64,000 nucleotides of DNA from Monocercomonoides exilis PA203 (GCA_001643675.2 LSRY02000010.1:744001-808000); one strand, 5' to 3'; numbered from the stretch's first letter, positions 12,801-45,963 are shown. Program-made: numbers and translations. Notes: generated from the letters alone by a model not told the origin.

Positions 12801-13679
12801 GAGAAGGCGATCCGCAGGCGCAGGATGGAAGCAGCGAAGAAGCTGGCGAATGAGACAACAGCGAATTCTGAGAGGAAAAGCGGACTGAAAAGAAGGAATG
12901 CATCTTTGACGACTGCTCCACCGCCTCCAGTTGTGCTGAATGAAGAAGCAGAAGACAGCAAGGAAGGAGGAGTAGCAAATGTTAACACAATAACACTTTC
13001 TTCTTTGCCTTCATTTGGCTACTTCAATTCAGTTGCAGCGAATGTGGCAGCGCAACAAGCAGAGCCGTTCTTTGCAGATGCAGACAATCCATTCAGTGAG
13101 AATGAGGGAGAAGAAGGAAGAGAGGAAGAAGGCAAAGCGGAGGAAGAGGAGGAAGAAGATGAAGAAACTAAAGCAGAGAGAGAAAGGAAGAGGAAAGAAG
13201 AAGAAGAGGAAAGAAGGAGAATGGAGATTGAAGCAGCAGAAGTGGAAGCGATGCTCAACCAGAAGCCAAAGAAGGCAGTTGTGTTGTCATCGCCACTTGC
13301 ATTGCTGGAAGAGGCACTGAAAGACGAAGATGCCTCACACGCAGGCAAAGAAGGGGGGAACAAGACAGCGGCGAGGGGAAGTCCAATTAGCATGTTTGCT
13401 TCTTCAACAGATGGAGAAAGCAACGAAGAGAGAAGAGGAGAAGAGAATGGTGATGATAACGATGAGAAGGAGACAGGTCTGTTCCAAACTGACGATTCCG
13501 TTCTGGATGAGATCTTTTCTGCACAGCCACAAACGGCTAGCAACTCTTCGGGGTCAGCTGCAAGCGCTTATCAAAAGAAAAAACAGGCTCAAAGACATCA
13601 GACAAAACCTGACCAAGGCTCTCTCTTTGAAGATGTTGAAAGCTCGGATAAAAACGCAGATGATCCTTTGTCTCAGTGA
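9841..13679 (+). CDS. TBC-domain Rab GTPase-activating protein, TBC1D5-like, with a long low-complexity/coiled-coil C-terminus
   Basis: RSICWRFFLG, ENPLS...W..FF, Arg finger LHLDLNRLFP, Gln finger YCQGMHEIL, and QWMRVMYLREF...LRLWDAVF. ATG 9841 plus intron 9864-9922 (GT..AG) joins in frame to ORF 9849-13679. Confidence 0.9.
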
Positions 13680-16158: not shown

Positions 16159-16190
<32 letters not shown>

Positions 16191-22087: not shown

Positions 22088-22127
<40 letters not shown>

Positions 22128-25100
22128 TTCTTCTTCTTCTTCTTCTCCCTCTTCTTCTATTTCTTCTGCTAATCTTTCAGTCTTTTCATTGAATGGAACT
22201 TTATCCCCATCAACTCCCATCCAACCCCACCACACCTCTTCTCCTTCTCTTCTTTCTCCTCAGCCTTCCAATCTTCTATGCCCTCCTGCTCCTCTTCTCC
22301 CTTCTTCTTCCTCTTCTTCCTCTTCTTCCTCTTCTTCCTCTTCTTCCTCTTCTTTCTCTTCTTTCTCTTCTTTCTCTTCATTGTCTGATACAGACCCTTC
22401 TCATCTGTCTCCTCCCACTCAATTTTCTTGGTATTCTGCTCTTTCTCCTCATTATCCTTCTCCTAATCCTTCTTCTTCTCCTTCCCTTTCTTCCTCTTCC
22501 TCTTCTTCTCATTCTTCTTCTTCTTCTTCCTCTTCCTCTTCTTCCTCTTCCTCTCATCGTTCTATGCCTCCTCTTGCTCCTTCTCACAAGTCTCCAGTTG
22601 TCATCTCCTTCGACTCTTCTCCTTTGTCTTCTGATGATCCTGCCACAAACATCAATCATTCACACTTGAATAAAAAGAATAACACACAAAATGAGACTTT
22701 TCCATCTTCCTCTTCCTCTTCCTCTTCCTCTTCCTCTTCCTCTTCCTCTTCTTCTTCTTCTCATTCACCCAACAGAGCTGGTCTTAGACCACCTATGCCT
22801 TCTTTGGCTCCATTAACTCCTCCTACCTTAACTTCTTCTTCCTCTTCCTTCTCTTCTACCTCCTCTTTATCTTCTCCGCCTTCCTCCTCCTTTTCCTCCT
22901 CCTCCTCCTCCTCCTCTTCTTCTTCTCATCCTTCTTCTTCTTCTTCTTCCTCTTCTGTTTTATTCAGTCCCCTCAGCACCGATGACTCATCCGCTCTTTC
23001 TCCTTCTCCACAGAAGAAAGAGAATAAAAAGAATAAAAAGAATAAGAAGAAGAAGAAGATATTCCAAATGAAGGAACACAGAGTGAAAAGGGATGCTAAA
23101 TCAGAAGGCGGCAAAGGAAGGCAAAGGAAGCAGAAGAGATTTCATAGAAGATTTTCATTTGAAGATGGAAAAGGGTTTGAAGACTTGAACGATGAAGACG
23201 ATTTGAGGAACGAAGATAGCATTTCTGTGAGGAGCAGGGCTTCTTTGAATGAAGAGAGAGGAGGAGAGGAAGAGAGAGAAAGAAAAGAAGAAGGAAGAAG
23301 AAGAGAAGAAGAAGATGATGACGATGAAACAAAAGAAGATTATATCACATCTCATAGGATTCCATTAATGAATGAGCTTCAGATGACAACCAACCGCCCC
23401 ACAAGATTGCTTGCTCCGTCTTCTCTTCTCTCACCTCCTTCGACTCCTCCTCTGCAAGACAAACATTCACAGAATGCTAACAGAGATTCATTGAATGCTT
23501 CGTCTTCTTCTTCTCATCCTCCTTCTTCTTCCTCCTCTATTAATTCATCATCATCATCATCGTCGTCGTCGTCGTCCTCTTTTTCTTCTATTTCTTCTCC
23601 ACCTGACATGTATTCCAAACTCCAATCTCAACATCAACATCAACATCAACCACAACCTCAATCCCAATCCATTCAATTCCCTCCTCTCAGCCAACAATTA
23701 ACCCCTTCCTCTTTCAGTGCACTCAGCTTCCCTTCTCTCCCATCTGCCGCTGCAAATGCCAACATTCGCATAGACTCTCCCTTTCAATGTGAATCTCCTT
23801 CTTCTTCTTCTGGCTCTTTGCCTTCTTTAGCCTCTCTCTCTTCTTCCACTTCCACGCTCAATTCTTCGTTTTCTATGCTTTCTTCTTCTTCTTCTTCTTC
23901 TTCTTCTGATTCTTCTATTTCTTCTTCTTCTTCTTCTTCTTTAGCTTCTTCTTATTCTTCTCTTTCTTCTTCGAATTCTTCGATGAATTCATTATGTTCA
24001 TTGGAGATTCCAGAGAAAGAAGAAGAAGAAGAAGAAGAAGAAGAAGAGAAGGAGAAAGAAGAAGAAGAAGACGATGATAAAGAGAAAGAAGAGAGAAACA
24101 GACAATTCCTTTCAGAAGATGACAAGAAAGAGAAAGACATTCCACTCAACAACAAAGACAATAATATTCTGAACGATTCTTTTAACTTGACGGTCGAAGG
24201 CGAAAATGACAATAGAATCATTCTTCACAAGCAAAACGAAGAAAAAACCGAATTTTCAGAAGCGGAAAAGGCAATTTCTGTGATTGAGCAGCAAACAACA
24301 CACGAACATCTCAAAGAGAAAGACACCAACAGCACAGGAAGAGCAGAAAGAGAAGAATCGTCTTCAGTTAATTCTCCATCGAATGCTTCATTCGAACAAC
24401 ACGCTGTTCCTTCTCTCTCTTCTCTGGCAGCTGCTTCATTGACACAAGACTCGCCTTTATCTGAATCTTCTCTAACAGCTTCTGCTTCTTCTACTGCCAT
24501 TGCTTCTTCTCCTTTGTTTTCAACGTCATCGTCTTCTTCTTTTTCTCCTTCCCCCTCCCCCTCTCCTTCACCTTCACCTTCACCTTCTTCTTATTCTTTC
24601 TCTTCTTCCCCATCTCCCTCTCCTTCTCCTTCTCATTCGACTCCTTTTCTACCAGTTCATTCTATTCTTTCTTCTTCTTCTTCTTCTTCTTCTTCTTCTT
24701 CTTCATTTGCACAAAAAAGAAGAAAACAACCAATTTTTGAGGTGTCACATCGCAACAGCAGAAGAAGAAGAGCTTCAAGAACAGCAAATGCCATAGCATC
24801 ATCATCATCATCAAATTCTTCTTCTTCAAATCCACTTATTCCAAATAGAATGTTTACTGGATCATCTGAACAACCTCATTCTAATGATTTTCATGTTCCT
24901 TCTTCTTCTTCCACAACAACTGCTGCATTTTCTTTGAATTTAGCTTCAAATCCTATCTCTTCTTCTTCTAATTCTTCAAACAATTTCTCCTCCTTTTCCT
25001 CTTCTTCTGTTAATATGTCTTCATCAAGATCTCCTTCTTCTTCCACATCTCGTTCTCCTCCCACCTCCACATCACCTGCCTCTTCTTCCATCTCTACTGC

Positions 25101-28100
25101 TTCTGCTTCTTCCAGATCTTCTTCCTCCTCCTCCTCTTCTTCCTCTTCTTCCTCTTCTTCCTCCTCCTCTTCTAATTCTTCAGCCTCATCTCCATCCTCC
25201 TTTATCTCCTCTTCCTCTGCCCCTTCCTCCTCTTCTTTATCTCGTGCTTCAAAGACTCCTCATCATCTTCTGCAGTCAATTGCCTTCACCCCAAGCAAAA
25301 CTGAACACAATCTGAAGAGTTCACCAAGAAATGCTTCTCTTCTGCTTCCTTCTCTTCCTTCTTCTCATTCTTCTTCTCATTCTTCTTCTTCTTCTATGCC
25401 TTCTTCTTTACCATCCCCATCTCCTTCTTCTTCTTCTATTCATCATTCTCCTCTCTCACACACCCCTTCACACAGCATGATTGTTCAGCATCCTTTTCCT
25501 TCATCATCATCATCATCATCATCTTCTTCTTCTTCTCTTTCTCCTCCTCCTGCGTCTTCTCCTTCATCTTCTCCATCATCATCGTCATCATCAACATCAT
25601 CATCAGAATCCACTCATCAATCAAACCCTCCATGGGATTCTCCTCCTCTTCGTCGTCTTCTTCTTCTTCCTCCTCCTCCTCATTTATCTTCTCAGCCTCT
25701 TTTCTCAAGAGAACACAGACTCCATAGCATTCGTTCTTTTTCTTTACGTTCGCCTTCTTCTTCTTTCTCTTCTTCTGCTGCAAATGCAACAAATACATCG
25801 ACATCATCTGGATCTTCCTCTACTGATTCATCTTCTTCAATATCATCATCATCATCATCATCATCTTCTTCTTCTTCTTCTTCTTCTTCTTCTTCCTTCT
25901 CTTCTTCTCTTTCTCCTTTTGCTCACACTCCTCACTTCCCTTCCATTTCTCATGTTCGCTTTGCTTCTTTTGCTCCTTCTATTCCCTCTCTTCCCTCTCT
26001 TCCCTCTTCTTCCTCTTCTTCCTCTTCTTCCTCTAATCCTTCTATTCCCTCTAATCCTTCTATTGCCTCTATTCCTTCTTCTCCCACTCTTCCTTCTTCT
26101 TCTTCTTCATCTTCTCGCTCTTATCGTGCTGTCATGCCCCGCCGCCACGTAAACGCCCAAAGAAGACGAAGAGATGCTGAATCCAATTCTTCTGCTAATT
26201 CTGCCCATTTTTCTGCTTCTTCTCCTTTCTCATCTGCCCAGCTGAATCAAAGAAGAACTCCAAACATTCACTTTAGAAACACTCCAAATGCTGACCCGAC
26301 CGAAATTCGCCGATTCTTCTTCCCTCCTTCTGCTTATTTGAGGAATCTTTACTCCAACTCTTCCACAGCTCCTCCTCCTCCTCCTCCTCCTCCTCCTTCC
26401 TTGTCTGCTTGGGACGCTTCTCCTTCCTCCTCTTTCTCTTCCACCCCAACTGTTCCTCTCTCTCCTGCCTACGACTTCTCTGCCCTTTCTTCTCTTTCCT
26501 CTTCAGCCTCACCAAACTTCTACGCTGCAGCCGCCGCTGCTGCTTCTGCTAATAGCTCTAATCTTCCTCCTTTCCTCCACCACATTCCTGAGTCTCCTGT
26601 TTCCTATGGCACAGATGAATTCCCAGGAGACGTCTTTTCTGTTCCTTATTCACTCTCCATGCTCATGCAACAAGGGCAAGCACAGCCATTGAACATGCCT
26701 TTCTCTTCTCTCTTTTCATCAACTTTGTCTTCTTCTCCCTCTGCTTCTTCCATCGTCTCTTCGTCTTCAGCTGCTGCTTCTAATTCATCTGGCAGTAACT
26801 CTTCCACTTCTCCTTCTCTCTCGCAGTTCTCTTCAAATCGGTTGTTCCTTTCTATTTTAGGCTCAATGAACAGAAATGCACAGTTTCATGGTGATTCTTT
26901 GTTTCCATCTTCAGAACGTTCTTCTTCATTTGCTTCTTCTTCCTCTTCCTCTAATACATCTCCTCATGTTATTCCTCTTATCTTTCTATCTCCTTCTTCT
27001 TTCCTCTCTCCATTTGACCAACAGCTTCATCCATCCACATCCTTCGTGATTTCAGACACAAATGAGCCATGCTATTTCAGCAATGACTATGAAGGCAATG
27101 GTATTCTTGGTGGAGATGCGTATCAGATTGGAAGTGATGAAACATTCAGCCGAAGGAACAATACAGACAGTCGGAGCGATAGTGAGAATTCTGACAATGA
27201 AGAAGAAGAAGAGGAAGATGATGAAGAGGAAGAAGAAGATGATGATGTGGAAGAAGAACTTGAATGCTCTTGGAATAAAGGAAAATTCAAAGAAAGCGAG
27301 GATTTATTTGAGAGTGATATAAGTGAGGAGTTTGGTGAAGACTCTGGAAGCAATCAATTGAGAAATAGAAGATCTGTTTCAAATAAAAGAGAAATGAATG
27401 AAACTTATTCTCATTCACAAATGACAAGGCATTCAACGGATAGAATTTCATCAAACGATAATGTTCCGAATCATAAGAACGAAATGTCCATTGAAGATTC
27501 TGAAAAGCAGGATGAACTTGATGATTCCTTTTCCACTGATTCGAACAGAGAGTTAAGAAGAAGGAGAAATCAGGTGGAATTACTGAAAATGAAAATGGCA
27601 ACACCAACAGAAAGCAAAAAAAGATCAAAAGACAAACAAAAAGGATATAAAAAATCACCAGCAGAAAAAATGGTTGCTGTTCGGAGGAGCAAAAGAAAAG
27701 AGATGGCTTTGATGGAAAGAGACAGAATGATGGATGAAGTTAACCTTTTGAGAATAAACCGTATGCTTTGTGCTAATGTTAGTATTTGGAATTGAAAATG
27801 CTTATTTGAAATGATTTGATGAAATTTTGTTATTTTCTGAAAGAAATTATTTTTCGTTTTTTAATTTTTATGATAAAAATTTTTAACTCTTTTCCCCTTC
27901 TATTTTACAAATTTGATTCACATTTTCCATTTAGGGTATCTGCTTCAAATACACAAGTTCAGTTCCTTTATCTCCACAACAGCTGCAATGCAATCTCTTT
28001 CATTGTTTCTCCGCTCTATTCACACTCCTTTTTTCTATCAATCAAAGTTGTGTCAGAGCACATTGATTGACGACTTGAAAGTCATTCTGAACAATCAGTT

Positions 28101-31100
28101 GATTGGAAGGGTGTATATTGAAGAGCGCAAAAGATACATTCGAGAAAAATATCTTGCAATGCTGTCGAATCAGTTGGAGGAGAAGAGAAAGAAGAAGATG
28201 GAAGAAGAGAAAGACAAAATAAAATCAGGAAATGATGATGCAAGTGCAAGTTCTGGCATTGACCGCACATTTTCATTTGGGATGAGAAAAGATGATGAGT
28301 CGCATGGAAACAATCAAAAACAGCTAATTGCTCAAAAAGAAAGAGAAAGAGAAAAAGAAAAAGAAAGACTTTCTGTGACATTTGCTACAACTGGATCGCA
28401 AAAGCAATTCACAGCTGTAACACCGGCACAATCATTATCTATTCAAACAAGACAATCATCAAATAACTCAGACATTGTGAGAGCATTTATCTCAAAAAAC
28501 AGTACACATAACAGAAGTTCACATCCTTCATCGGAATGCTATCTAATTGGCAGCTATTCTTCAGCACAGATGAAAAATGCTTTGCGAAAGCTATATCCAA
28601 CAAAGCGCGGGGCAACAGAATCAACACAACCTCATTTCGATGCACAGAAAGAAGAGGCAACATTGAATGTGAATTTCAACTTGATCTGTCTGCTGCTGAT
28701 GAGACTGGTGGATGAGTCGACGAAGATGGCAAATGTTGTCATTGAAAGTGGCATTTTGAAGGAGATTGTTCTTCTTCTGCTTTATCTGAAGCCCAACCAG
28801 CTGACTGTTTACCACTCAGATCTGTTCTCTTATCTCGCGACTGTCACAGACTCCCTCTCAACAAATGCACTTTCTCATTTTGATGATACAGAAAATGCGA
28901 ATTCTTCTCGAAATAAGAGCTTGAGTTGTCTTACACATGGGCAGAATTCACGTTCTAATGAAATGATAAGGCCATCCTCAATTTTCCCTTCTGTCTTTCT
29001 GTCTTCTTCAAGCAAAAAGGATCCAATTCGTTCAACAGAGACAAAGAATGACATCATCAACAGATCAACAAAAATCCTATCATATTCAATAGTTGAAGTT
29101 CTCCTTCGTTTTATTTCTCTTCCGCTTCTTCCAAAACAAAATGCCAAAAAAGCAAATGTTTATGCTACGTCGCATCAATCTAAGCAATCAGGCAACTCAT
29201 CTTTGAAGTTTGGCAATCAAAAGCCCAAACAAGTTTTCAGAAACAGTTCAATCACGCAAAGATATTCATTCCGCACTCAGTCTTCAAGTCAAACAAGGCC
29301 AACTTTCTCGTTTTCTCCAGAACAACGAAATAACTCTTCGTCATCTTCCTCCTCCTCTTCTTCATTCTCTCTTTCTAATTCTTCTCCATCTCCTTCACAT
29401 TCTCCTTCTTTTACTCCTCCTTCTCCTTCATCCACCCCAACATCTTCATCGTCTTCTTCAGCCAGTTCAACCTCTCAAACAAATGCACTTTCAATTGCCA
29501 CACAAGCTGCATTCACTCTGTTTTCTCTGATATTTCCGTGCAGCACATTCTGCCTCCACCCAAAGCAGCATGTTGAGACGATAAAGAGCCAAATATTCGA
29601 ATGTCCATCTGCTTGGGAGCTGTCTACAAGTGAAGAGGAACTCAAGAGGGAAGAGGAAGAAGACAACAAAGAGTTTCAAAGAGAAAGCGAGCAGAAGAAA
29701 AAAGAAGAAGAGGAAAAAGAGAGAAAAATTCGGGAAGAGAAAGAAAGAAAACAGAAAGAATTGGAAAAGGAGATGGAAAAAGAAAAAGAAAAAGAAAGGG
29801 AGAAAGAAAGGGAAAAAGAGAAGGAAAAAGAGAAGGAGAAGGATAAACATCTGAATCCGGGCAATATGAGAAATAATTTAATGAACAGGGCGAATAGGAT
29901 ACGTCAACGTGCATCAGAAGCAGAAGAAAGCAGAAACAGAGACATTAGCCACATGTTTTTTGGGAGGCGAGAAAGAGAAAGAGAAAGAGAAAGAGAAATG
30001 GTATTCGCACGAAATAGAAATCGACCAACTTACCCTTATTTGAACATGTTTCTGGTGCCGTACCACGAAACAGAGGAGAAAGAGTACGAGAAGAGAGAAA
30101 GAAGCAGAGCAGCGCATTTTGAAGAGCTGGAGAGGAAGAAGATCAAAAGACAGAAAATGAGAGTGAGAAAGGAGAATGAACAGAAGAACTGGGGAATGTG
30201 TGTTTTGTTGGAGGCTATGCAGTACAATGATCCTTCTTCATCATCAAATGGATCAACAACTGTTTCTTCTTCTTCTTCCTCTTCTTTCCATTCTTCGTCG
30301 TCGTCGTCATCATCATCTGCCGCATCAACATCCTCCTCGCCATCTTCAGTCACAGATCCAGAAACACCACAGCTGATACAGACTTCTTCCTCTTCCGCTC
30401 CAAATTCAACTTCTCTTTCTCTTTACATCACTTTGTGTGTATATGAACTGTTTGACACTCAAACCATTGAGGTGCCCCAGAAGAATAAGGATAGTTCTAT
30501 TTCTTTGACATCTTCGCTTTTAAGCCCATCTTCCAGAATCCACTTTTGGAGGATGGTTTTGTCAACATCCGCACTGTGTCTTCATGTTCGGAATGTGGCT
30601 TTTTTGCAGTTAGTACGCTTTGCAGCCAACGAGGGTTTGCAATTTTCATTGACTATTCTCTTTTTGTAATCGTAATTCTGATTCTTATTAAAATTTTTTG
30701 CTTTATTTTCAAATTCTATAAATTTATAAAAAAATTGTCTTTAACTTCTTTTGTGGTGTGTCTTCAACTTGCTTCTGGATCTTTGCATATAAAACAGAGA
30801 ATTGGCCTGCTTTGATGAGTGGAAAAACAGATTTCCGCTCTTTTTGCCCTCAAATCACGTATGCATAGCTATGAACATTCATTGACATTTTTTTGTATTT
30901 CTTGAATTTGATGAAATTTTTGAGAGATGATGACGTTTTTGTTCTCAAAGTTATTAACAAATTCATTATTAATTTTTTTTTGATTTGCATATTTTTATTT
31001 CAAAATGATCAGCAAACTGGAGAATATTTCAACCCTTGCACTGTTTGTATCTTGCGTACCGGATGCCTTTCTTCAGGAAATGTTCAACTCTGGTCTTCTC

Positions 31101-32900
31101 TTCCATCTCAACGACTTGGGTAAAGTGATCCCATCACGTGATCGTGAAGGGCTGTTTCTATTGATAGCAGCAATTGTAAAGAGATGCCCTTCTTTTTCGA
31201 GAAAGGTTGTAGACTCAAATCTCATGCTGCTGCTCTACTACACACTTGGCTCACGGGCACCAAACGACGCTTCTGTTGTGTCGTTTGCTCCGCCAACATC
31301 TCGTTTGCCACCAAAGAACTCGGGAATATCAACATATTCATCCTCAAAAACAAACCCATTTGAACAGAATATGATGAAAATGATTGTTGTGCGCTCGCGT
31401 TTTGAGCTAGTGATGGCCTTTCATCACATCTCGCACTATTCAGCTGCAGCTGCTTTGTCTCTTGCACGCAAAAACTGCTTGTGCCAACTGCTCGTTAATG
31501 TTATCAGCCCTGACGCTGTGATACAGTTCTTTGCGCTTTCAACATGCATTCGATCAGTTTTTTACTTGTTCATCTTTGGTGACTTGAATGAATCTGGATG
31601 TTGCTCGGCTTCGCCAACTATTACTCCCTCTTCTTCAAGTGCAATGCAAACATCAAATAGATCTCAGTCTAAGTCTAAGTCTGTGACTTTTGGCTCTTCT
31701 CCACCACTAGCATCTTCATCAACTGAATCATCAAATGTGACTCAAAGTTCAGTTCCAGTCTCGTTGGCTTCTGTTGATACTTCATCCAACGTTAATTTGC
31801 AATTGAATTCAAGCGCATTGGAGTTGTCATCTTCAATTCCCACTAGTCAGTTGCGTGTTGATACTTCTTTGTCTCCTCAGCAGGTTTCTGATGCTTCGAT
31901 TGATAGCTCTCCAGATTCTTGCTCTAGTACTCAAATGAACTCATTGTCTGTAAGCAGTGACAACGTGTTCTGCGACTCTTCAAGTGATTTCCATCCTTCA
32001 ATTACATCAACATTGTCTAAAAACAAACGGACTTCTTTGCATCATCATCCTTTCCGGTTAAGCTCTCCTCAAAGCTCATTTTGCTCTTCAGCAGCTCTTT
32101 CAACTTTCTTTCACACAGCATCGGCTTATCCAGTCTTTGACAGATTGGTTGAGTTTCTGATTTCGGATTATCAAAACACTGACAACACCGTCTCTCACTT
32201 GGTTGCTATGCTTTTCGCGTTTCACAAAGAATGCTGGAACAAAAAGATTCCCAATTCAGTCGCCATTCCAGACGATCATCCTTGTTTCGAGCTATTTCCG
32301 TGGCTTACACGCCAGTCTAACACATCTTCTTTTGGAAAAGACATTCAGAAACTGTCCAATCAGCAGCAATCTTCTCGTCCTCCTTATGTTCTTCATTTGG
32401 TTTTACAGAGACTTCGATGCATCTGCTTTTCTTCTTTTGTTTTCTTTCAGCCACTTTCCCTTGTTCTCTTAGCACAACTGTTGAAGCGAAATCGTATGAT
32501 ATTTTTGATTAATTAGTGAAAATTTATTTTTCATAAAAAATTGTAATCTGTATTTGCTTATTGCTTCATTTATTTTTCAATTTTTCGAATTTTCAGCTCA
32601 TCTTGCAACTCCCATGTTTGTATCGAAGGAGCTTGTATCAACTCTTATTCACTTGATGCAGTATGTATTATTTCGTTTCTTTTTTTGACTTAACCATTTT
32701 GACAATTTTTTCCCCTCAACATTAGATCTCCAACAACAGCTGTCTCAATAGCTTCAACAGTGCTGCTCCAAACTCTTAAAACTATTTCTTCTTCTTTTCC
32801 TATTGATAATGATCAGGAGTTAATGCTTGCTGAAATTGCATCTGAACAGTTGCCAACGCCTCTTTTGCTGAGTGAATGGATAATTCTGAACTCTTTTTAG
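13801..32900 (+). CDS. Giant (~6,000 aa) protein-kinase-domain protein, probably a pseudokinase, with a huge Ser-rich region and a helical ARM/HEAT-like C-terminus; about 11 exons
   Basis: GKGHLG, VAMK, HGNLKPEN, DYG, YIAPE and SDMYSCG in exons 13801-15271. Subdomain XI (NPNMRLTA) starts the 15487-27760 exon. Frame-preserving GT-AG introns at 27761-27934, ~30635-30797, ~30859-31012, ~32494-32596 and ~32661-32725 link ORFs 27913-30669 and 31005-32516 to a TAG at 32898-32900. Confidence 0.72.
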
Positions 32901-33942
32901 ATGCTCATATTGTGCAATTAATGAATGTGAAATTCTCTTTTTTGTTGAATTATTGTTCAAATAGATATATTCGGTTTTTCTTGTAAAATAGGTTTTTAAT
33001 TTTTTCATTTAAAAGTACCATTGAATCTCAACATAAGCGTTTTGTTTTGAATCTTGAAAGTTCGAATCTAATCTGAAAAAGAAGAGAAACGTGAAAAAAA
33101 TGGATAAATGATTGAAAATGATCGAAAATAAGATTAAACTTACAACAGATGCATTATAATGTGCCGGATAAACATTATAAGATAACGTTAACAATGCTTG
33201 TCACAACACATGCATTCAACAAAAAGAGACTTTCTAATTGAACTGAAAGGAATGACTCAAAATAATTGTTTTTGATAAAAACATATCAAGTAAAAAATAT
33301 TCTTATTCAAACCGCAATACATATAGAATTCATCAAAACAACAAAAACTTTCGGTTAATGACATGTGAAAGTTTTCACTTGATAAACAGAAAATTGCGTG
33401 TTGCATAATGCCACTAAAATAAGATCAAAAGTATGGGTTTAACATAAATATTCAATAATAAACTGAGAAAATATAACATAATCATTCAAAGCAAACAATT
33501 ATCGATTTTAGCGAAATACATTGATATCACAAAAAAGTCAATTATGAAGAGAGGATGCATAAAGCCAAGAAACAGTTGACAACATAATTATGAAATGCAG
33601 AAATGGTGAAAAATAAAATTGTAAATGAAAGTCAATTTAAAATCTGGTTGCCAAAGATATGTACGTCAAGCGTATGATATCATTTAGTGAATTTCGAAAT
33701 TGAGAAATATTATTTTGGAAAATATTTACAAAAATTTAAAAGTGAAAATTCTCTTGAAATAAAATTAAGCTTCTATCACTAACAAAGCCAAGAAAAGCAA
33801 AGCATACATATATAATGTTCAAAAGATGAATCAAAATAGTTAAAAAAATACAGAAAATGATGCAAGCTTTAACAACGAAAAGAAAAAAAAATATCAACCA
33901 AAAACAATTTCAACTCACAAATAAAAAGAAAATGAACAAAAA

Positions 33943-36900
33943 CTAATTCAACTTGTTCAATCGAGAAATGACTTGCTCAAAATTATGCTTTTCGATAATA
34001 GTTGCATTTTGTCCATTATAAAAATCATTAACATATCGAGGTACGTTTGCACCCTTTTTATTCATATAGATGTCCGAAGGAATATTTGTACCAGATGCTT
34101 GAATAAACGTAGACAATTCCCTATCTGTCGCATCCATTTCATCTTTCACAATAGATTGATATAACAGATTGACTTCAGATGCATGTGGCTTTTCATTTTG
34201 GAATTTTTGGTATAACTCAACCATCTTTCTATAAATCCAAACATGAACAACAAAGTGCTGATTTCTAGCTTTAGAAGGCAAATTGAAGTATTCCATTAAT
34301 GCCTCTTCAATTGCACAATGTTCTCCAAATAATGCAAGAATAGATTCCATTTCCCGAGAAAGTTTTGAACGTGCTGTGTTCTCCTTCATATCCGCAAGAA
34401 GCGATCCAATTGATTCAATGATATTGCGATGAAGAGTGTCCCATTGTTCAATGCCGATGTTCATTTCTTCTTTCCATTGCACAAACAAAGATGATGTCGA
34501 AGAGATGTCACTCAAACTTTCACTTAATTCAGCAACCTTTGAAATTGAAGAAGGAAGTGAAAGATAGAAACCGCAGGCAATGACAATCATAAACACTGCA
34601 ATGGTGATAAACAATATCAAAAGAACCCTCGAAGAACTGCTCACGAACTGATCCAGCATTAATGTGTAGTGATTGGTCATTAAATTGATGCCATTTTTAA
34701 GATCAGCAGTGACAGATTTTATCATATGCTGATAGTTCACATCATAATAGCTGAAAGAACTCTCACTCATTTGAGTCAAGGAACTGGCAGCATCAATAAA
34801 ACGCGAGCAAAGTTCCTGAACTCCGTGGTATGTTCCAATAATTCCAGGAAGACGATCAGCAGGGCAGCTAATGTTGATGCCTTTTTCAGAAATGCAATCG
34901 CAAGTTCCAGAAGCCAAGCTGTCAAGTTCTTTGTCACTCCCTTGCATTCGTTGGATGGCAAACAAATTGATAAGTTCATCTCCAGTAGATGGAGAGTCCT
35001 TTGTGCCAGATGTCACAATCGCATTGATTTCGTTAAAGTGCTGTGCTAATTTATTGATTGTATCTCGAAGAGAATTTCTTGATTCGCAGAAACGGTTGGA
35101 TTTCAAAGCAGGAGACGTAAACTCGGAAAATTCCCTTGTAAGTCCAGGATCAATCAATGGATATGTCGCACTTGAAAACATCATTGAAGCAAATCCAGAC
35201 ATCTGGACAAGGACAACTGCACGATATCCATTGAGAACAATTCCAGCTGTAATTGTTTCAAATCTTCCAAATAAAATAATTCCCACAATAAAATAAGCAG
35301 AAGAAGAAGCGACAAGGAGGATTGTGCCAACAATAATACGAAACCAAATGCTTTTCGGTACAATGTCGTTTAAGTGTGATAGTCTTGAATCAACATCAGC
35401 CATTCTCTGCTCTGCCTTTCTTTTTTCTTCTGCTTCCATCTCCGCAGCTGTCTGAAGCTCTATTCCTTTTCTAACGTGCTCATCCATACCTTTACGCTTC
35501 TTTCCTTGTTTGCCATTGTTTCCATTCTGTTCATCCTCAGAGTTTGAAGAGCTTGAATCCGAACTATCATTAGAGCTGGATGAATAACTGTCAGATGAAC
35601 TTTGAGAGTCATTTTCCAAGTTGAACTTGGAATTTGTGTGTTTATGATGTTTCTTTTTGTAGCTATGGCTTTTCTTGTGAGATAAAGGATTATGCATCAA
35701 AAGATTTGTTTCACTAGACATGGGAAATGATGTTAATGAAGGAAATGAGATCATTGATGAAGGAGAAATGAGAATGGAATGCATATCATTCTTAGAAACA
35801 GGAGATAATTGTGTTGCTGTTGATGTTTTAATACCATTATGAGATTCAGATTGTTGAGAGCTTGTGGAACGTCCTGTGATAGCTTTCTGGTCTTGTGCAT
35901 CTGAAGAAAGCGTATCATCTGCAATTGGACAGAGACTCCACTGCGAGGCAACATTAGTCAACGAAGGATAAACAACAGGAGAAATAGGTTGCTTTAAATT
36001 AGTAGTCTGAGAAGTTAAGGAAAAATCATTGCGCATCGAAACTGCAGAAATTGCAGAAACAGCAGAAATGACATCGCGAGAACTTGCAGAAAGATTGCCC
36101 TGCGAATCCAAAGAGGCTGCTCCTGGAATTGTAAGATATGATTGAAACCCAGAATCTGTTCTCTTCGTCATTCTCATTGATCTATCCATCGACTTATCGT
36201 TTTGATCTTTGAGAGAATTGGTATGTGCATTTTGAGGCTGTGGCTCTTCTTTTGAGCCTTGTTTGCTTGTGTCCTTTTCATCGGATGTTTCATTTGATTG
36301 CTTTCCCTCCAACTTGTCCACAATCTTTTGGGCATCTTCTGGGGAACAGTCACACAAATTTCTGAGTTGTTTCTTTCGCTGCCTCATTAAATGTCGAATA
36401 AGCATAAACAAAGGCAGAAAAGTCATGCAAATATTCAGAATTACGCAGATGCATAAAAACAACACAAAAAGCATAGTTGCCTGAGACATAATCTTTGAAG
36501 TCTCCACAAATGAGTCAGCACTCAGACTTTTAAGCTTTTCTGAAAGAACGAACGGGACGTTAAATGTAAATGCACACGATATAGATTCCATCCTTGCGAG
36601 CGTGACTGATTGCAGATCAATATCACTGAACATCTCAGAGATTATATCATGTGCCCAGCTGATGAGTGATATCATTGTCAGCTTCTTGTCTACGATGGAA
36701 TCAACAACATACTGCGAATTCAAAGAAGGCTCCAGCCAGATGTTATTGCTCTGCTTCCATCTTTCTTGATTGTAGGAGTTTTTATAAAACCCTGAGAATT
36801 GCCCATACGATTCCTGTTCTGCTTCCAGCGCGCTCAGCTTTGTGGATCGGAGTTCCGTAACAAGTTGGTCCATGCTGAGGCCAATGTCAGAACGGTTTGT

Positions 36901-39900
36901 GTACACAAACATGTACAGCTCCATCAGACCAAAAGCATTGTTCATCTCAGAAGAAATACGCATCGCCTTCCTCAGATTATCTGACGAAACAGTTGCATCG
37001 TCAAACATCGAGTTTGCTTGCACATATGAGACAATGAATATCACTAGAACAAGCATTAGAGCCAAGTACAAAAATGTCAGCGCACATATTATGCGCATGG
37101 ATTTGTTTTGCTTCGAATTTACTGTCTCCGAAAAGTTTCTCCAGGAACTTGTATTTTTCTTTCTTTTTCTGTCTTTTTTATTAAGCAACGTCTTTTTTCT
37201 CCTTTCCGGCTGTTGCGAGCGTGCCCCTCTTTGTTGTATGGCTTGACTCGTCGTTTCTCTGTCAGACAATCCCGAACCTTCAGCTGATTGTACCATTCCC
37301 AAAGCATCAGCCCAGAAATCTGCTCCTTCCTTTCTTTTCATTCCTGTATCTGGCTCTGTCATATCGCTATAACCCAAATTTTGCTTTGTCACGTCACTTT
37401 TCACCGCCCAATTATCGTTCAAAGAGTCTCCTTTCACATTCCCTCTGTCTGTTGTGCCAGATGCATCGTTATTAAACGACTGCATAGACAGAAGCGAGAC
37501 AGTGTCGAATGCTGAGTTCTCAGTCATAGTCGCTTCTTCAATCGAGTCAGCTTCGTGGAGCAGCTCAGTTGCTGCCTCTTCGTCCATAAACACATCCCTC
37601 AGCAGCAGCGCATACTGGCGCATCACATTCGCGTTGTCTGGATAAGCCTCGAGCAAAGTGACAAACACGTGCTGTGCGCTTTCTCTGTTCTGAATGCTCT
37701 CAACAGCATGTCGCATGACCATCTGCACATCCACCACTCTCCGCGCGAGAAGCGTCCACATTCGAATCAAATGCGCTTTAGCCAATTCTGTGTCCTTGTT
37801 CGCTTGCTGCAGCTGGATGTGCATCATGTATGCTCCGCTGACTTTCCCGCTCTCTTCCTCCAATCCTGTTCTTTCTGATAAGTCTTCGTCAATATCCAAA
37901 GACTCCATCGAATTAACTGTCTTCAGCATACCACTTGTTGAGCCACCGAACCCAACGTTGTATCCCATTTTATTTATTGCACCAGCAGAGTAATCTTCTC
38001 CCGTTGTCATTGACAATTCTCCGAGAATGCTCTCCATCTTTTTCATCTTTTGGTAGATTATCCATCTGTTTGTCCAGCCCGGGCAGCACTCACAAGCACG
38101 CTGCAACAAACGGCCGACCTGAACAGAGATTCCCCTCAACATCGAGCGGTGCTTGCGCGCCTTCTTGAACGAGTCCAGAAACAGTGTGTATGACACAATC
38201 AGCTCAGCAGACTGCTCAAATCGCTCTTTGTTCAATGCAGCAATGTAAAGTTCATCAGCAAATGCAAGCAAATTATCGTAAACGGCAAGCTTTCGAATAG
38301 AAGGATTGTAGAGAAATCGTAAAGACATCTCAATCTTCTCAGGCTTGTTGAAGAGTTTGAGTACTTTCTTGATTGTGTGTGCAGAGCTGAGGATTGCCAG
38401 AGGACCAGCAGATTCCGCAGATAGCCCTTCTGTGGACTCAAACCTTTTCTTAACCCCTCTTTCTCCTATCTGAATGAATGGTGATGAACAATTAGTTGGA
38501 GAAACGCTCACCAACGAGGAAACTGAATTTGTGGATGGATTACGAGAATGACTTGAAAGGGAGGCTGACGATTTAATCATTGGATTTGTTGAAGTGAAAG
38601 GGACAACTTGTTGGAGGCCTGAATGGGAAGCAGATGAATTCAGTCCCATAGAAGCTGAAGGAGGAGAAGATGATGTATTTGAATTTGAATATGAATTTGA
38701 ATTTGAAGAAGAAGAAGAAGAAGATTTTGCAAGTGATTGAGTAGGATGTGAAGTGTTGCCTGAACTGCTCGCATTTGCAGATGAAGATGAAACAGGCTGA
38801 ATTGCAGGCGAGGACAAAAAGGGGGATGAAGAAGTGGAATTAGCAGTTGAAGATGTCTGTTGAGATGGCTGTGGGCTTATTTGAACAAATGAAAAAACAG
38901 GAACAGGAAGAGACGAAGAAAGCGTTGATTGCACAGGCGTGGAAGACGAAGACATTTCCACAACAGGCAGAAGATTGTCTGTGGAAGAGCTCGGAGAAGC
39001 TTCAATGCCAGAAGCAGTCGAAGAAGTGTGCCTATGAATAGAAATTTCAATATTCGAAGAACCTGTCGAAGCAGATTGCTGTGAATTTGATGAAAAAGAG
39101 TTTGAAATCTGTTTTGTTCCAACGTGATTGGTCACAAGTGTAGGAAGAAGAGGCAGTTGCGTATTTGACTGTGAAGCAGTCGGAAAAGAAGATGGAAAAA
39201 TTTGACCCAATGAAGATGACCGAGGAAAGCCCGGACTTGCAGAAGGCGATCCAGCAAATCCACAAAATTTTCCTGAAAGATTCGAAGACAGCTGAGACTG
39301 CCTCTCATTTTTGCTCATTGTACCAGAAGAGTATTGGCACACGACATCTTTCCCCAGTTTTAAAATAAATCCGAGTTCTTCTTTCTTTCCGGCAGTTCCA
39401 TTTTTCGTCTCAGAGTAAATTGGCTTGATCAGCCAATTTGTACTCTGTCTTTTGCTCATCAAAACTCCGCACAGAACGCTAAACAATCCGCAGCACAGCA
39501 CAAAAACCACCCAAAACAAAGCGCCAGCTCCAAATGCTCCAATGCTTGCAGAAGCACTCTCAAATACGCCCAGAAAGAACGATGCAACGCCAGCACCCAG
39601 GCTGAAACCCAAGCAACTGCACACGAGAATATTCCCCATTCTTGCATAGAATGGATTGGACACAAAATAAATAATAACTGCAATGAGCAATAATGCAGTG
39701 TGTGAAAAGCTAACAACTAAGCCAGATAACTTTTTCAAAACAACTCCAAGAATACAATCCAATTGCAAAATTACGCTGACCAATGCAGAAGTTCTTCCAT
39801 GTCTGGAAGAAAAGATATTTCCATGTAAGCCATCTGGAAAAAAAACAAACACTCGATAAAGCCAGATGTAGCATATTATCAACGGAATTGCAATCGAGCA

Positions 39901-40630
39901 AAGAATGACAAGCGTTTTTGCAAGAGGGGTGTTTTCACAGAATTCGGAATCAAAGTTCCTTTCGTGAAACAAACATAAGTACGGATGACATAGCTTAGAA
40001 ATAATTGGGGTCATTCCAAATGTTGTCAATATTAATCCAAAAATTTGTTCGATTCTTTGGATGAAGAATGGATACTTTTTCTCGTGCTTCTCCATTGTAC
40101 AACCAAAAATTGACATTACAAGAATTGATATAAAAAATACAATAAAAATCAATACAAAAACAAAAAGGTTCGTTATAGAAGGTGTGTAAAACGAAGGGTC
40201 AAAATACAATCTAATAAAAATAATAAACTCTAATCGTAAATTTTTTTCTGTAAAAGTAAATAAAATACCCAATAACTCTATTTACTTCTCTAATTCCTAA
40301 GTGCAATATATCATTCCGCTTGAGTGGAATAAAAGCTGATTGAAAGGTCATTAGAAGACTTATGAGAACAATTGCAAATTTTTGTAATTGGATCCCTTTC
40401 TATAATGTAAGCATTACAAAAAGCAATTGCAATAATATAAAAATATAAATAATAAACCGATATGTACGTTGTGAAAAAAGAGAACAGTCTGAACAAAATT
40501 ATTATGTCAATAATAAATTCAAGCTATCAAACGCTTTGTCCAATGCATCAAATCTTGCAAATGTAACAGACACATCTGCTGATGACGATGAATTTAATGA
40601 GCCAACAGATTTCGTGTCTATTTCCGCCAT
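33943..40630 (-). CDS. TmcB/TmcC-like multi-pass membrane protein with a C-terminal hemerythrin-like domain
   Basis: ORF 33943-40272 plus short upstream exons (putative ATG 40630). N-terminal cluster of TM helices, a Ser-rich insert, TPR-like helices (LLEAYPDNANVMRQYALLLRDVFMDEEAATELLHEADSIEE), two further TM-helical ectodomain-TM units, then the hemerythrin signature. Confidence 0.8.
34100..34486 (-). other. Hemerythrin-like (bacteriohemerythrin-type) di-iron domain coding segment
   Basis: WKEEMNIGIEQWDTLH...EHCAIEEALME...NQHFVVH...EMDATD matches the W...G...D..H / HxxxE / HxxxH / HxxxxD pattern, with the last His replaced by Glu. Confidence 0.8.
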
Positions 40631-41201: not shown

Positions 41202-44200
41202 ATGCTAAGTACCGAAGGCAATAAGATTGATGATCAATCTCCTGGTTCACATGAGAATCGTATGGAAGAACAAGCTTCTTCTTCATGCGACCATGTGCAT
41301 GATAAGCATATTTTAAGTTTCGAAGATAAATCTGAAGCTAAAGTTGAAGTTAAGAGAAAACAAAACACTGAAGAGCAACAAAATTGTTGTTTCAATGTGT
41401 TCTTCTGCTTTTATTTTCAATTTATTTTCAGGTGCCATCCAATTCGAGATGAAGACATTTATGAACCTCATTCTAAAGATAAGACCGAACTCACGACAAA
41501 TAATGGAAAGAATTATTGGATGAAGAGATATGTTAAATATTTAAAGCAAATGGAAGAGTATAATGCAGAAATAATTCGAAGTCCAAGGTATAAATAAAAT
41601 TCTATTATTTCTTTTTGAAGCAGTTGATTGCGATATTTTTCCCAAATTTTAGCTCCAAAATTAAAAAACCTTCAAAGCCGTCTTTGATATTTACAATTTT
41701 ATTTGGAGTTGGCACATTGCAACTTATTCAAGCAATTATTCTGTGGACGATATGGTATCTTTTTTTTTTATCCATAATAATTTAATTTATTTGAAATTAA
41801 TTGCGAACAGTTACATCATGTGCTGCCTTCAGCCATATTTGATGAAATTAATTTTGGAAGTTATTACAAGGAAGATGACGAATCCAAACGAAGAATTTCC
41901 ATATGCGACTGCTATTATTTTGATGGTTTCCAATTTTTTTGCGATTTTGGATTCGTGGGGTAATAGGATACTGTACCACTACTCAGCAAATGTTAGAACG
42001 TGCTTAAACGGAATGATTTTTAACAAAACGCTTTTGCTGAACATTACATCTCAAAACAATGTTGATGCAGGCAGATTGTTATCGCTTTTAGCATCTGATT
42101 GCAGCAACGTTGGAGACATGATTTGGATGCCCTTTATGCTTTTGCTGATTCCTCTGCAGATTATCATGCCATTTGCTTTTGTGTGTGCTGAAATCGGTTG
42201 GGTTGGAATTATCTCCGTCATTGTTGTGCTGCTATTTTTCCCAATTCAAGGGCTAATAACTATGTTTATCGGGAAACATCTGAATAAGTACTTAGCGCAC
42301 AACGATGAAAGGAATCGCGTTACAAACGAGACTTTGCAAGGGATCCGAGTGGTGAAGTTTAGCGGGATGGAGGATGTGTTCATGAGGAAGATTTGCTCAT
42401 CTCGAAATCTGCAGCTGAAAGACATGTTCAACTACACGTTTTTCCAGCAATTTCTTGAGGGTGTTGTTCGTGTGCTGCCTCCACTTGTCAATCTTGCAAC
42501 TTTCGGTACGTACATAGGGGTATACAACTTGAGGCAGGAGGAGTTTACGCTGAAGATAATGCCCACAATTCTCTTCCTGACGCTGCTCACCCGCCAGGCG
42601 AACATGATCCCAACGTTTCTGCAAGGCGTAGCGATGATTTGGATCAGTCAGAAGCGTATACGCGACTTCCTTCTTCTGCCAGAGCTGAAGAAGGAGCCAG
42701 TGGCAGAGCCTAAGGAAAGTGATATTGCGCTTGTGATTGAGAACGGTACGTTCAAATGGGGAGATCCTCCTGATATTCCGATGTCAATGGAGGAGGAACA
42801 AAAACAAATGGAAGCAAACAAAAGGGAAAAGCAAGACCAAGAAAGAGAATTGGCGAAGGACATTGTAGGCAGTGGCAAGATGAGTGCTACAGATGCCGCT
42901 TCATCTTCTGCTTCTGCAAGTAGCTTATCTCCGGAGCCATCGAAAGCAATTTCTGACTCAACTGTTGGCACAGATATCGTTAGTGCAGAATGTGAAGAAT
43001 TGGAAGGCAGTAAACAGATATGCTCTGAAACTAATTCATCATCATCTTCATCTTCAATATCGAACAACTTAACAGACATGTCTTCGATGACTGTTGATGA
43101 GGTTATGCAATCGTCGGAGGATGCTCCACGCGACTCGTCATCTATAAGCTTGTTATCTTTGTCATCTTCTAATTCTTGTTTGCAAGCACCGCCAGCAGCA
43201 GAATCAACATCTCCACAGCCATCTCCGTCTCCTTCTGATTCAACTCCAATTACTCCATCGTTTACGTCTTCTTCGTCGAAGAAGTTTTTGTTGCATTCAA
43301 TTAACTTAAGAGTTGCAAAAGGTTCGCTAACAATGGTGATTGGGAGTGTTGGCTCAGGAAAGTCATCATTGGGATCAGCTTTGATAGGAGACATGGAGAA
43401 GCTGGAAGGGGCAGTCCAACGGGCTGGAAACATTGCATATTGCCCTCAAGTTGCGTGGATCAACAACAACACTGTAAAAGGGAATATCCTTTTTGGAAGT
43501 GCACTGGATGAGGAGAGATATCGGGAAGCTGTTCGCGTATGTAGCTTAGAAACAGATCTGCGAGAGCTGGCGGCTGGAGACCAAACAGCCATTGGAGAGA
43601 AGGGAGTGAACCTGAGTGGTGGACAGAAAGCGCGTATCCAGCTGGCGCGGGCAGTGTATGCAGACAGAGACATCTACATTTTGGACGATCCGCTATCGGC
43701 TGTTGATGCACATGTTGGACGTTTTCTGTTTGACGAGTGCATAGAAGGAGCTCTGAGGGGGAGTGGGAAGACGGTGCTGCTGATCACAAACCAGCTGCAG
43801 TTTTTGGATAAGGCAGACCAAGTTGTTGTGATGAAAAGAGGAACAATTTGTGCACAGGGGAAATATGAGGAATTGAAGGAGCAAGGGATTGATTTTAGCA
43901 GGTTTGTCATCAAAAGGAAGGGTGACATGAAAGACAGGAAAATGAAAGAGAAGAGCAGAAAAGCGGAAGGTGCTGAAGGAATGGAAACAGCCAACAAGAT
44001 TACCGAAAAGAACGATAAGGAATTAATCAAAATTGAGAATGATGGTGATGAAAGAAGAAATAAAGAAAATGGCAGTAATAAGGAAGAAGAGAGCAAAGCA
44101 GGAAGGCAAATAATGACCGAGGAGGAATATGAAACAGAGAAGGTTCCTGTGAGAAGTTATATTTCATATGTTAGATCGCTCTTCCCATGGTGGGGTGTGT

Positions 44201-45963
44201 GCGCATACTTCATACTTGCTCTGATTGCGAACGGAGGAGAGTGCTTCCAGTCGTACTGGCTTGGAGTGATAGGAAGCAGCACGAAGATTGAAGAACTGTC
44301 ATACGGATGGAAGATCGGGGTGTATGGACTGCTCACTGCGTTTGTGTTTATATGCCAGATGCTACGAGGAGTTATGGGATCATTTGGCGTGTGGAGATCA
44401 ATGAAGATAGTGCACGATGGACTCTTGAGGCGTGTGATGCACTGTCCATCGAGTTTCTTTGACACCACTCCTTTGGGAAGAGTATTGAACAGGCTAACGG
44501 GCGATATGACACAAGTGGATCAGGTGCTGTTTGGGCAGATTGTCCGAGTAGTGAACATGGCGAGTGGAGTGGTTGGACAGGTGGTGATTGTGGCTGTGGA
44601 TACTCCAATTTTCCTAGCAATTGGGCTGCCTGTTCTTGTTGTGTACTGCAGCTTTGTGCTTCTGTACTCGCGGGCAGTGCGGAACTTGCAGCGGCTGGAA
44701 GCCATTGCGCGTTCGCCTGTTCTGTCGCTGTTTGGAGAAGTGGTGAATGGAGCTGGCCTACCAACTATCAGAGCATTCGAAGTGGAGGAGAAATGGCGGG
44801 AGCGGTTCTATAAAGTGTGTGACGACTGGTCAATTCGGCGTGTGCTGTTTATGGAAGGGCCAGCACTTATAAACTTCTACATCCAAATGGTGAATGTGCT
44901 GTTTTTCGTAGGAGTTGTAATTCTTGGATGGTACTTTATGGAGCCGGCAAGTTTAGGAGTTTCCATTACAGCTGCTGTGAGCTTCTCCTATTTGGGTTCG
45001 TTTCTTGTGCAGCAGACAGTGGAGCTTGAGACGCGCATGACTTCTTACCAGCGTATCGAGTTTTACTCAACGAAGCTTCCACAGGAGCGAGATAACAACA
45101 GAGAAGGCGAGAAGCGGACACCATCAGAAGAGGCAAAGATACCGCGTAATTGGCCAACTGAAGGGACAGTCACCTTTGATCACGTGACATTCAGACACAG
45201 AGCAGGACTGCCTTATGTCTTGCAGGATGTGTCGTTTTCTGTGCGGAGCGGTGAGAAGATCGGGGTATGTGGGCGGACTGGAGCAGGAAAGTCGTCACTG
45301 TTATTTGCTCTTTTCCGGTTGGTAGAGCTGGATCCAGAGCTGCAGCCGACAATGCTGGATATGGTGACGGGGAAGCCTGTGGAAGCGAGCAGAGAAGAGG
45401 AGCCCAATAAAGGCCGAGTGGTTGTTGATGGTATGGATATCTCGCAAGTGCCTCTGCATCGTCTTCGGCAATCGATGGCAGTGATACCGCAGGATCCGAC
45501 ACTTTTCACAGGAACACTGCGATTCAACTTGGATATGGGCGGGCAGAGAAGCGATGACGAGCTGTGGGAGGTGCTTGAGGCGATTGAGATGAAGGCTGCA
45601 GTGGAGGAGATGCAAGGGCAGTTGGGTGCAATGATTGCTGAAGGTGGAAGCAACCTGAGCTGCGGACAGAGGCAGCTAATCTGCGTCGGGAGGGCGATGC
45701 TGAGTGGATGTCGAATTGTGGTGATGGATGAAGCAACAGCGAATGTGGACGTGGAGACAGATGCAAAAATTCAACATGCAATGGGGAAAATGTTTGCTGA
45801 CCAGACGATTATTGTGATTGCTCACCGGCTGAACACGATTATGCACTGCGACAGGATTGTGGTGCTGGACAGCGGGCGGGTGGCAGAAATTGATACACCT
45901 CAGAATCTCATGGCAAATCCTCAGTCGGCTTTCAACGGCCTCGTTCGGAGCTTGAATGGATAA
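41202..45963 (+). CDS. ABC transporter, subfamily C (MRP-like), TMD-NBD-TMD-NBD
   Basis: NBD1: GSVGSGKS, LSGGQKARI, ILDDPLSAVDAHVG. TMD2: FFDTTPLGRVLNR. NBD2: GRTGAGKS, IPQDP, LSCGQRQL, MDEATANVD, IAHRL. Two short introns (~41589-41652, ~41755-41810) join ORF 41202 to ORF 41743-45963. Confidence 0.95.

Follow-up and report, generated by a model that had tools for sequence, protein, structure and literature searches.

The question raised by this locus is what a hemerythrin domain does at the end of a eukaryotic multi-pass membrane protein. The gene lies on the minus strand at 40630-33943 of a 64,000-nucleotide stretch of Monocercomonoides exilis PA203 DNA (LSRY02000010.1:744001-808000; hereafter the window, with positions counted from its first letter) and encodes 2175 aa once three inferred introns are removed. 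An earlier note on this DNA had placed here a ~2,200-aa TmcB/TmcC-type protein with a hemerythrin tail, a candidate O2/NO/iron sensor suited to an anaerobic gut protist, which M. exilis is; its length and coordinates (33943-40630) agree with the present model. A Pfam match classes the protein as TmcB-like and its fold marks it as a hemerythrin homologue, yet it is neither a canonical O2-binding hemerythrin nor a trichomonad-type transmembrane cyclase (TMAC). The preferred reading, held at a little short of an even chance, is that the tail may be a di-iron redox switch, linked to the membrane module and lacking any enzymatic output.

Sequence and predicted fold together confirm the tail as a bacterial-type hemerythrin homologue. 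The spaced ligand pattern arose in 0 of 20,000 shuffles, and a profile built without this protein and two sub-branch paralogues scores the tail at 104.6 bits, against 5.5 for the best of 500 shuffles. A profile of the paralogue family matches Methylococcus bacteriohemerythrin (4XPX) and DcrH-Hr with E-values of 1e-14 to 4e-14. Curated models score lower: NCBIfam NF033749 (bacteriohemerythrin) gives E 2.7e-13 and 50.2 bits, below its cut-off of 84; TIGR02481 gives E 1.9e-12 and 47.3 bits, below a cut-off of 51.75 that two sub-branch relatives exceed; and Pfam Hemerythrin PF01814 gives 17.6 bits, below 25.3. A phmmer search of the Protein Data Bank with the single tail returned no match, in contrast to the family profile. 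Word-index homologue searches returned zero for the tail region and for the last 485 aa and one paralogue for the TPR region, blanks that reflect a limit of the method, as a HMMER search gave many relatives.

The AlphaFold model of the tail (pLDDT 91) is closest to DcrH-Hr (2AVK; Z 16.1, rmsd 1.9 Å, 131 residues), followed by bacteriohemerythrin (Z 15.0) and invertebrate hemerythrin (Z 13.0). The 14 top Foldseek rows are all hemerythrins, yet none reaches an E-value of 0.001 or better. Best matches to outside hemerythrins mostly stop before a three-helix C-terminal extension. The earlier note's tail matching the hemerythrin pattern therefore stands as to homology and four-helix fold (Z 16.1), and its last ~190 aa do model as a hemerythrin; the pattern itself is incomplete, the last histidine being a glutamate. 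The profile searches it suggested are likewise divided: TPR_TmcB is above cut-off and the NCBIfam hemerythrin E-values are 1e-13 to 1e-11, but all hemerythrin scores are below curated cut-offs.

The canonical hemerythrin motif is H-HxxxE-HxxxH-HxxxxD; three of its histidines bind Fe1 and the other two Fe2, the iron that binds O2, and a glutamate and an aspartate bridge the irons (PMC9388753). In this tail the motif reads H-HxxxE-HxxxH-ExxxxD, such that the fifth iron histidine, the last on Fe1, is replaced by glutamate. Six canonical ligands are retained, and the predicted ligand set comprises four histidines and three carboxylates: His2014 (34429), His2051 (34318), Glu2055 (34306), His2072 (34255), His2076 (34243), Glu2111 (34138), and Asp2116 (34123). 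The Glu2111 codon (34138-34140) is identical in RNA contigs. An assembly error behind the substitution is ruled out, as four RNA runs show no other letters and four relatives carry an acid at this position. The pocket is altered as well: the tryptophan four residues before the fifth histidine is isoleucine (34150) and the phenylalanine after His2051 is cysteine. The Trp and two Phe/Leu positions carry smaller residues and stay hydrophobic. Among 231 outside hemerythrin domains, chosen by a profile that favours histidine, the fifth histidine is found in 231, the tryptophan in 213, and the phenylalanine in 215.

An acid (Glu or Asp) at the seventh-ligand position is common to this gene, loci L002, L003, and L021, and P0080, a metagenome protein of ~25% identity from JGI sample 3300042596, which we take to be a termite gut metagenome. 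These five form one branch (SH-aLRT 92 over 502 columns, 87 for the domain alone), and all retain both Fe2 histidines. Between this gene's hemerythrin domain and that of its closest paralogue, L002, dN is 0.29 and dS is saturated. The remaining family members either have all seven ligands or lack the second histidine instead (about half of the sampled paralogues); E, H3, and H4 are invariant across the family alignment. Because six ligands are kept and Glu/Asp occupies the position in 5/5 of a deep sub-branch against His in 231/231 outside, the acid looks like a retained alternative ligand rather than decay. Judged by motif and pocket, the tail is not a canonical O2-binding hemerythrin.

The tail is joined to the membrane region in a single gene, whose main open frame runs without stops through 33943-40272 (minus strand, 2109 codons). 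An upstream ATG at 40630 is reached via three short, AT-rich GT-AG introns (44, 58, and 58 nt; 16-23% GC), which are placed from sequence and paralogue likeness, exons 1 and 3 each having been compared singly to MONOS_6676. A nearer alternative donor for intron 2, at 40467, runs into a stop and was rejected. From the N-terminus, the features are:

40533-40630, minus strand: predicted exon 1 with the start ATG (45% over 31 aa to the N-terminus of the annotated paralogue MONOS_6676, E 2e-5)
40489-40532, minus strand: predicted intron 1, 44 nt, GT-AG (23% GC; frame kept)
40458-40488, minus strand: predicted exon 2, 31 nt (LFSFF, the same as in paralogue MONOS_6676)
40400-40457, minus strand: predicted intron 2, 58 nt, GT-AG (17% GC)
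40269-40399, minus strand: predicted exon 3 with the first transmembrane helix (43% over 40 aa to MONOS_6676, E 5e-8)
40211-40268, minus strand: predicted intron 3, 58 nt, GT-AG (16% GC; the GLYFDPSF junction of paralogues is restored)
33943-40210, minus strand: exon 4, 6268 nt, through the stop codon (stop-free frame; RNA contigs over 33917-39899)
39457-40164, minus strand: transmembrane helices 2-8 of the N-terminal bundle (hydropathy; aligns to paralogues)
38443-39375, minus strand: Ser-rich low-complexity cytosolic stretch (sequence; no alignment to paralogues)
37483-38385, minus strand: conserved cytosolic domain of ~300 aa, including TPR_TmcB at 37528-37815 (PF25474, E 1e-12; 27-40% to paralogues)
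36397-37098, minus strand: transmembrane helix 9, ectodomain 1, transmembrane helix 10 (hydropathy and positive-inside pattern; no Pfam match)
35413-36300, minus strand: second low-complexity cytosolic loop (19% Ser; not conserved)
34564-35343, minus strand: transmembrane helix 11, ectodomain 2 (predicted four-helix bundle with two conserved Cys), transmembrane helix 12 (model pLDDT 90; Cys at least 90% conserved)
34477-34557, minus strand: 20-residue helix and short linker from transmembrane helix 12 to the hemerythrin N-terminal loop (helix 282-301 of the model)
34093-34476, minus strand: hemerythrin domain (ligand pattern, NCBIfam matches, family profile, model)
33946-34092, minus strand: family-specific three-helix C-terminal extension (aligns across oxymonad members)

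Hydropathy gives 12 transmembrane helices (TMs), of which eight form the N-terminal bundle (seven hydrophobic segments, one of them weak, at the N-terminal part of the main frame, and one in exon 3) and four are arranged as two pairs, in two TM-ectodomain-TM units. Topology was assigned from hydropathy, the positive-inside pattern, and the ectodomain cysteines. Given twelve TMs, basic residues that precede TM9 and follow TM10, and cysteines conserved in ectodomain 2, both the TPR region and the tail are predicted to be cytosolic. TPR_TmcB (PF25474) matches frame aa 820-915 at E 2.7e-11 (1e-12 in a second search) and 43.9-48.4 bits against a curated cut-off of 27, and the Atlas neighbours of the surrounding ~300-aa domain carry the same family. 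Pfam searches detected no PAS domain in the protein (none to E 5 within 37099-38385) and no match to class III cyclase PF00211. The PAS families PF00989 and PF13426 have zero matches genome-wide, and the genome holds only four class III cyclase loci, none in or near TPR_TmcB frames. The architecture drawn in the earlier note, namely an N-terminal TM bundle, TPR-like helices, and two TM-ectodomain-TM units on a TmcB/TmcC-type scaffold lacking cyclase and PAS motifs, is borne out on each of these points.

The main exon is expressed, and nothing suggests a separate tail transcript. Four RNA runs from one study contain 95-99% of the words in 33943-39900, and contigs over 33917-39899, in the 3′ part of the gene and clear of the introns, show no credible joint, indel, or differing letter. 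In run X1, 33978-39899 is covered by two pieces with a 29-base overlap. X3 record 18 corresponds to 33917-35519 and includes TM11, ectodomain 2, TM12, and the entire hemerythrin with its stop; X1 record 1, too, runs from TM11 to the hemerythrin end or stop. Such contigs neither establish one mRNA nor rule out DNA in the library. A tail on another transcript, which the earlier note had posed as a refutation, was not what they revealed, the contigs crossing from TM11 through TM12 to the hemerythrin without joints. Two apparent long-range joints were dismissed as repeats, as their sides, of 21-22 bases, lie in low-complexity DNA and their ends are non-canonical. A fusion artefact is likewise ruled out by the single stop-free frame, the spanning contigs, and the 52 family members with both domains in frame.

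In the model of the last 485 residues (pLDDT 90), TM11 and TM12 extend as long helices into the four-helix bundle of ectodomain 2. Bacterial receptors supply the top structural matches of this region, in the form of their ligand-binding domains: PilJ (Z 13.1), PcaY (12.1), Vc1313 (11.5), McpN (11.3), and NarQ (10.8), at Z-scores (10.8-13.1) close to the level of unrelated helical bundles. The Atlas rows include a parabasalid PAS protein as well as PilJ-domain proteins (TM-score 0.74 by target), and the feature neighbours are ciliate proteins. Ectodomain 2 has no Pfam match, including to the PilJ, NarX, and McpN families, and its likeness to such domains is a resemblance in predicted fold and not shown homology.

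The fusion is not a one-off. The 82.3-Mb assembly (101 contigs) contains 69 TPR_TmcB matches and 57 hemerythrin-tail loci, which form 52 pairs in one open frame, including this gene, and three more adjacent pairs. At least 55 of the 69 TmcB-like genes thus carry the tail that the earlier note had reported for this gene, and for most paralogues the architecture is read from open frames that hold both domains. Two tails have no partner; they are near-copies of one paralogue and are either short or interrupted by a stop. Several paralogue loci match MONOS_ protein annotations at 100% identity. Among the best 150 matches, a ranking in which non-oxymonad relatives could stand lower, the same tail occurs in Blattamonas nauphoetae (several members named ‘putative hemerythrin’), Streblomastix strix, and metagenome and run assemblies. 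In a quick tree of 132 columns, 33/33 family tails fall on one side of a branch from 35 outside hemerythrins (SH-aLRT 99). A single acquisition of the family hemerythrin fits these sequences, because one branch splits all tested family tails from the outside hemerythrins.

P0014, P0061, P0094, P0103, P0112, and P0134 were rejected as members, being bacterial-type PAS/GAF/SpoIIE multi-hemerythrin proteins without TPR_TmcB. At fourteen TPR_TmcB loci of the genome, no hemerythrin tail was detected. On contig C47, a seven-ligand tail is present in three near-identical copies (L012, L013, and L014), one within a 2650-aa frame, one within a 522-aa frame, and one with an in-frame TAG; by their sequences, this is recent duplication and pseudogene formation, as described for Trichomonas cyclases. 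The 3353-aa Blattamonas protein P0017 (KAK2960695.1) contains two TPR_TmcB and two hemerythrin-like units, either as a tandem fusion or as annotation-merged genes. In L015, L019, L020, L021, and L011, long insertions separate helices A and B (or C and D) of the hemerythrin, and the later ligands are retained.

A redox switch could operate as follows. A bacterial-type hemerythrin takes the place of the cyclase on a 12-TM scaffold of the TmcB/trichomonad-cyclase kind. The cytosolic tail would hold a di-iron site in which Fe2, the O2-reacting iron, keeps both histidines and an open position, and Fe1 would be bound by two histidines and one glutamate. On chemical grounds, the extra carboxylate and roomier pocket would favour rapid conversion to the diferric state, with O2 or peroxide as the oxidant, over stable oxy-binding, and cell reductants would reset it. 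The oxidation state would alter the N-terminal Trp loop, as in DcrH-Hr, whose N-terminal loop is ordered in the met and disordered in the deoxy form (PMC9388753). As this loop would hang on the helix continuing from TM12, the change could be passed on to the four-helix module in the membrane and to the TPR platform. Because the protein has no catalytic domain, the output would be the binding of a partner protein, perhaps at the TPR region. The whole would constitute a membrane redox/O2-exposure switch tuned differently from the seven-ligand paralogues.

A sensor role is plausible from the sequence, and it would probably consist of redox-state reporting of O2 exposure or iron rather than O2 carriage. 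Redox or iron sensing appears more likely than reversible O2 binding because the Fe1 histidine is glutamate and the pocket Trp and Phe/Leu are replaced by smaller residues. Bacterial hemerythrin sensors work by redox state with fast autoxidation, and the C-terminal hemerythrin-like domains of P1B-5-ATPases (H-HxxxE-HxE-HxxxxD), which have a His-to-Glu change on Fe1, are described as di-iron and O2-reactive (PMC9388753). The latter indicate that the swap is compatible with an O2-reactive di-iron site, and the precedent leaves room for rapid oxidation as well as for a stable oxy form (PMC9388753). Several points weigh against the redox switch. The S. meliloti P1B-5 domain with His-to-Glu forms an unusually stable oxy form (PMC9388753), which means that fast oxidation need not follow from the swap. 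The acid-bearing sub-branch has support below 95 in a quick tree, and its five members share ancestry; the absence of the second histidine in about half of the sampled paralogues means that the family tolerates ligand loss. Metal binding, O2 response, and cellular location are predictions from sequence and model, the protein is without a recognisable output domain, its partners are putative, and the sensor-like ectodomain in the model suggests that the signal may run outside-in.

An unlikely alternative is a sensor of iron (or other metal) availability, in which the site loads and unloads iron and its occupancy folds or unfolds the tail, as in FBXL5/BRUTUS. FBXL5 binds its irons through four histidines and three glutamates, and loss of the pocket Trp weakens the case for O2. 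Autoxidation is rapid and the irons are labile in the iron-sensing hemerythrin-like domains of FBXL5 and BTS (PMC12022348), and iron sensing is left possible for the P1B-5 domains (PMC9388753). However, in sequence and fold FBXL5 (Foldseek rank 21, TM-score 0.3) stands much further from this tail than DcrH and bacteriohemerythrin do (Z 16), and the tail has no attached ubiquitin-ligase or transporter domain. Reversible sensing of O2 (or NO) of the DcrH kind, as first proposed for this gene, is quite unlikely. The Fe2 ligands and both bridging carboxylates are intact, the pocket positions are still hydrophobic, the host is anaerobic, and the oxy form of the S. meliloti domain is stable despite its His-to-Glu (PMC9388753). 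In contrast, the fifth His, Trp, and Phe, near-invariant outside (231, 213, and 215 of 231), are all changed here, and the seven-ligand paralogues suit such a role better.

It is improbable that the hemerythrin is an output or metal-free docking domain, in which case an outside ligand would bind the ectodomains, the tail would recruit partners, and the metal site would be structural or vestigial. The tail does occupy the cyclase-output position of the trichomonad proteins (PMC2914791), the modelled fold of ectodomain 2 is receptor-like, many paralogues lack some ligands, and the conserved three-helix extension could serve as a docking surface. Yet six ligands persist over long branches together with an acidic seventh, E, H3, and H4 are invariant in the family, and outside-in signalling and a metal site are not mutually exclusive. 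A membrane-anchored scavenger of O2, H2O2, or NO, rather than a sensor, is very improbable. Altered-ligand hemerythrin-like proteins can be enzymes, such as Mka HLP, an NO peroxidase (PMC8913304), and the M. exilis genome paper places hemerythrin under oxygen-stress defence (PMC6759080); but a single di-iron site per 2175-aa receptor-like protein would be poor for bulk detoxification, and the genome already has catalase, flavodiiron protein, rubrerythrin, and SOD (PMC6759080).

It is possible, though doubtful, that in oxymonads, which are devoid of mitochondria and for which this genome search gave no PAS match, one acquired bacterial hemerythrin spread to more than 50 receptors with systematically retuned iron sites and chemoreceptor-like ectodomains, forming a graded membrane array for O2, redox, and iron sensing; the same guarded reading has three types of iron site, namely seven-ligand, Fe2-His-less, and, as in this gene, Fe1 His-to-acid, which would make the gene a natural 4-His/3-carboxylate class not characterised before. 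In the M. exilis genome paper, hemerythrin figures solely as a stress protein gained by lateral transfer (PMC6759080). A literature search, with most subscription papers outside its reach, returned no paper linking hemerythrin with TmcB or placing M. exilis hemerythrin on receptors, although databases already name some Blattamonas family members hemerythrin. With 55 of the 57 hemerythrin loci of M. exilis in this family, it is the obvious place to study O2 sensing in anaerobic gut protists. The ~190-aa tails are small soluble domains suited to direct expression and comparison, and with the natural His-to-Glu/Asp variant it can readily be tested how a single ligand shifts a hemerythrin between O2 binding, redox switching, and iron sensing.

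Elsewhere in the window, an ABC transporter with two membrane and two ATPase domains (41743-45963, plus strand) is divergent from the gene and begins ~1.1 kb from its start. Just downstream, on the opposite strand, are frames of 918 aa (27913-30669, plus) and 503 aa (31005-32516, plus) with no Pfam match. A 4136-aa open frame at 15385-27795 (plus) lacks a Pfam match and shows extreme strand skew (GC to -0.76, AT to -0.51); it may encode a low-complexity surface protein or may be a frame lying opposite a repetitive gene. The frame of at least 3221 aa at 54292-63957 (minus) combines N-terminal leucine-rich repeats with a PP2C phosphatase match (E 6e-12), a layout as in PHLPP/fungal-cyclase-like proteins, with no cyclase match reported. 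A RabGAP-TBC protein (9849-13679, plus) and a piece of an RsmB/NSUN-type RNA methyltransferase (778-1791, minus) are ordinary.

Among known systems, the Trichomonas vaginalis TMACs have six to eight N-terminal TMs, a ~300-aa cytosolic domain, TMs around two ectodomains, and a C-terminal cytosolic domain (PMC2914791). The present protein shares this layout and also belongs to a large paralogue family in a metamonad, a likeness drawn from the published description and one parabasalid Atlas model rather than from sequence alignment; however, the TMACs end in a class III cyclase and this protein in hemerythrin. A PAS domain after the TPR is common among TmcB/TmcC-like proteins. The Dictyostelium members (PF25474) resemble this protein in the multi-pass scaffold and a TPR_TmcB match above cut-off, and differ in that it has a hemerythrin tail and no PAS found in the protein or genome search. 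Between its two TMs, ectodomain 2 is modelled as a four-helix bundle followed by a cytosolic helix, as in the ligand-binding domains of PilJ, NarX, McpN, and Tar, to whose Pfam families it has no sequence match.

The FBXL5/BRUTUS proteins are likewise eukaryotic regulators with a carboxylate-richer di-iron hemerythrin fold; in contrast to the present protein, they belong to a separate hemerythrin lineage, are soluble, and are tied to ubiquitin ligases. The P1B-5-ATPases share with it a C-terminal hemerythrin on a multi-pass protein, four histidines and three carboxylates, and a swap on Fe1, yet theirs is HxE for HxxxH (the fourth histidine), the fifth is changed here, and this protein has no ATPase. 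The top structural match (Z 16.1), Desulfovibrio vulgaris DcrH, is also a membrane receptor with a cytosolic C-terminal hemerythrin; from it the M. exilis protein departs in lacking an MCP domain, in the fifth histidine changed to glutamate and the lost pocket tryptophan, in its three-helix extension, and in its eukaryotic scaffold.

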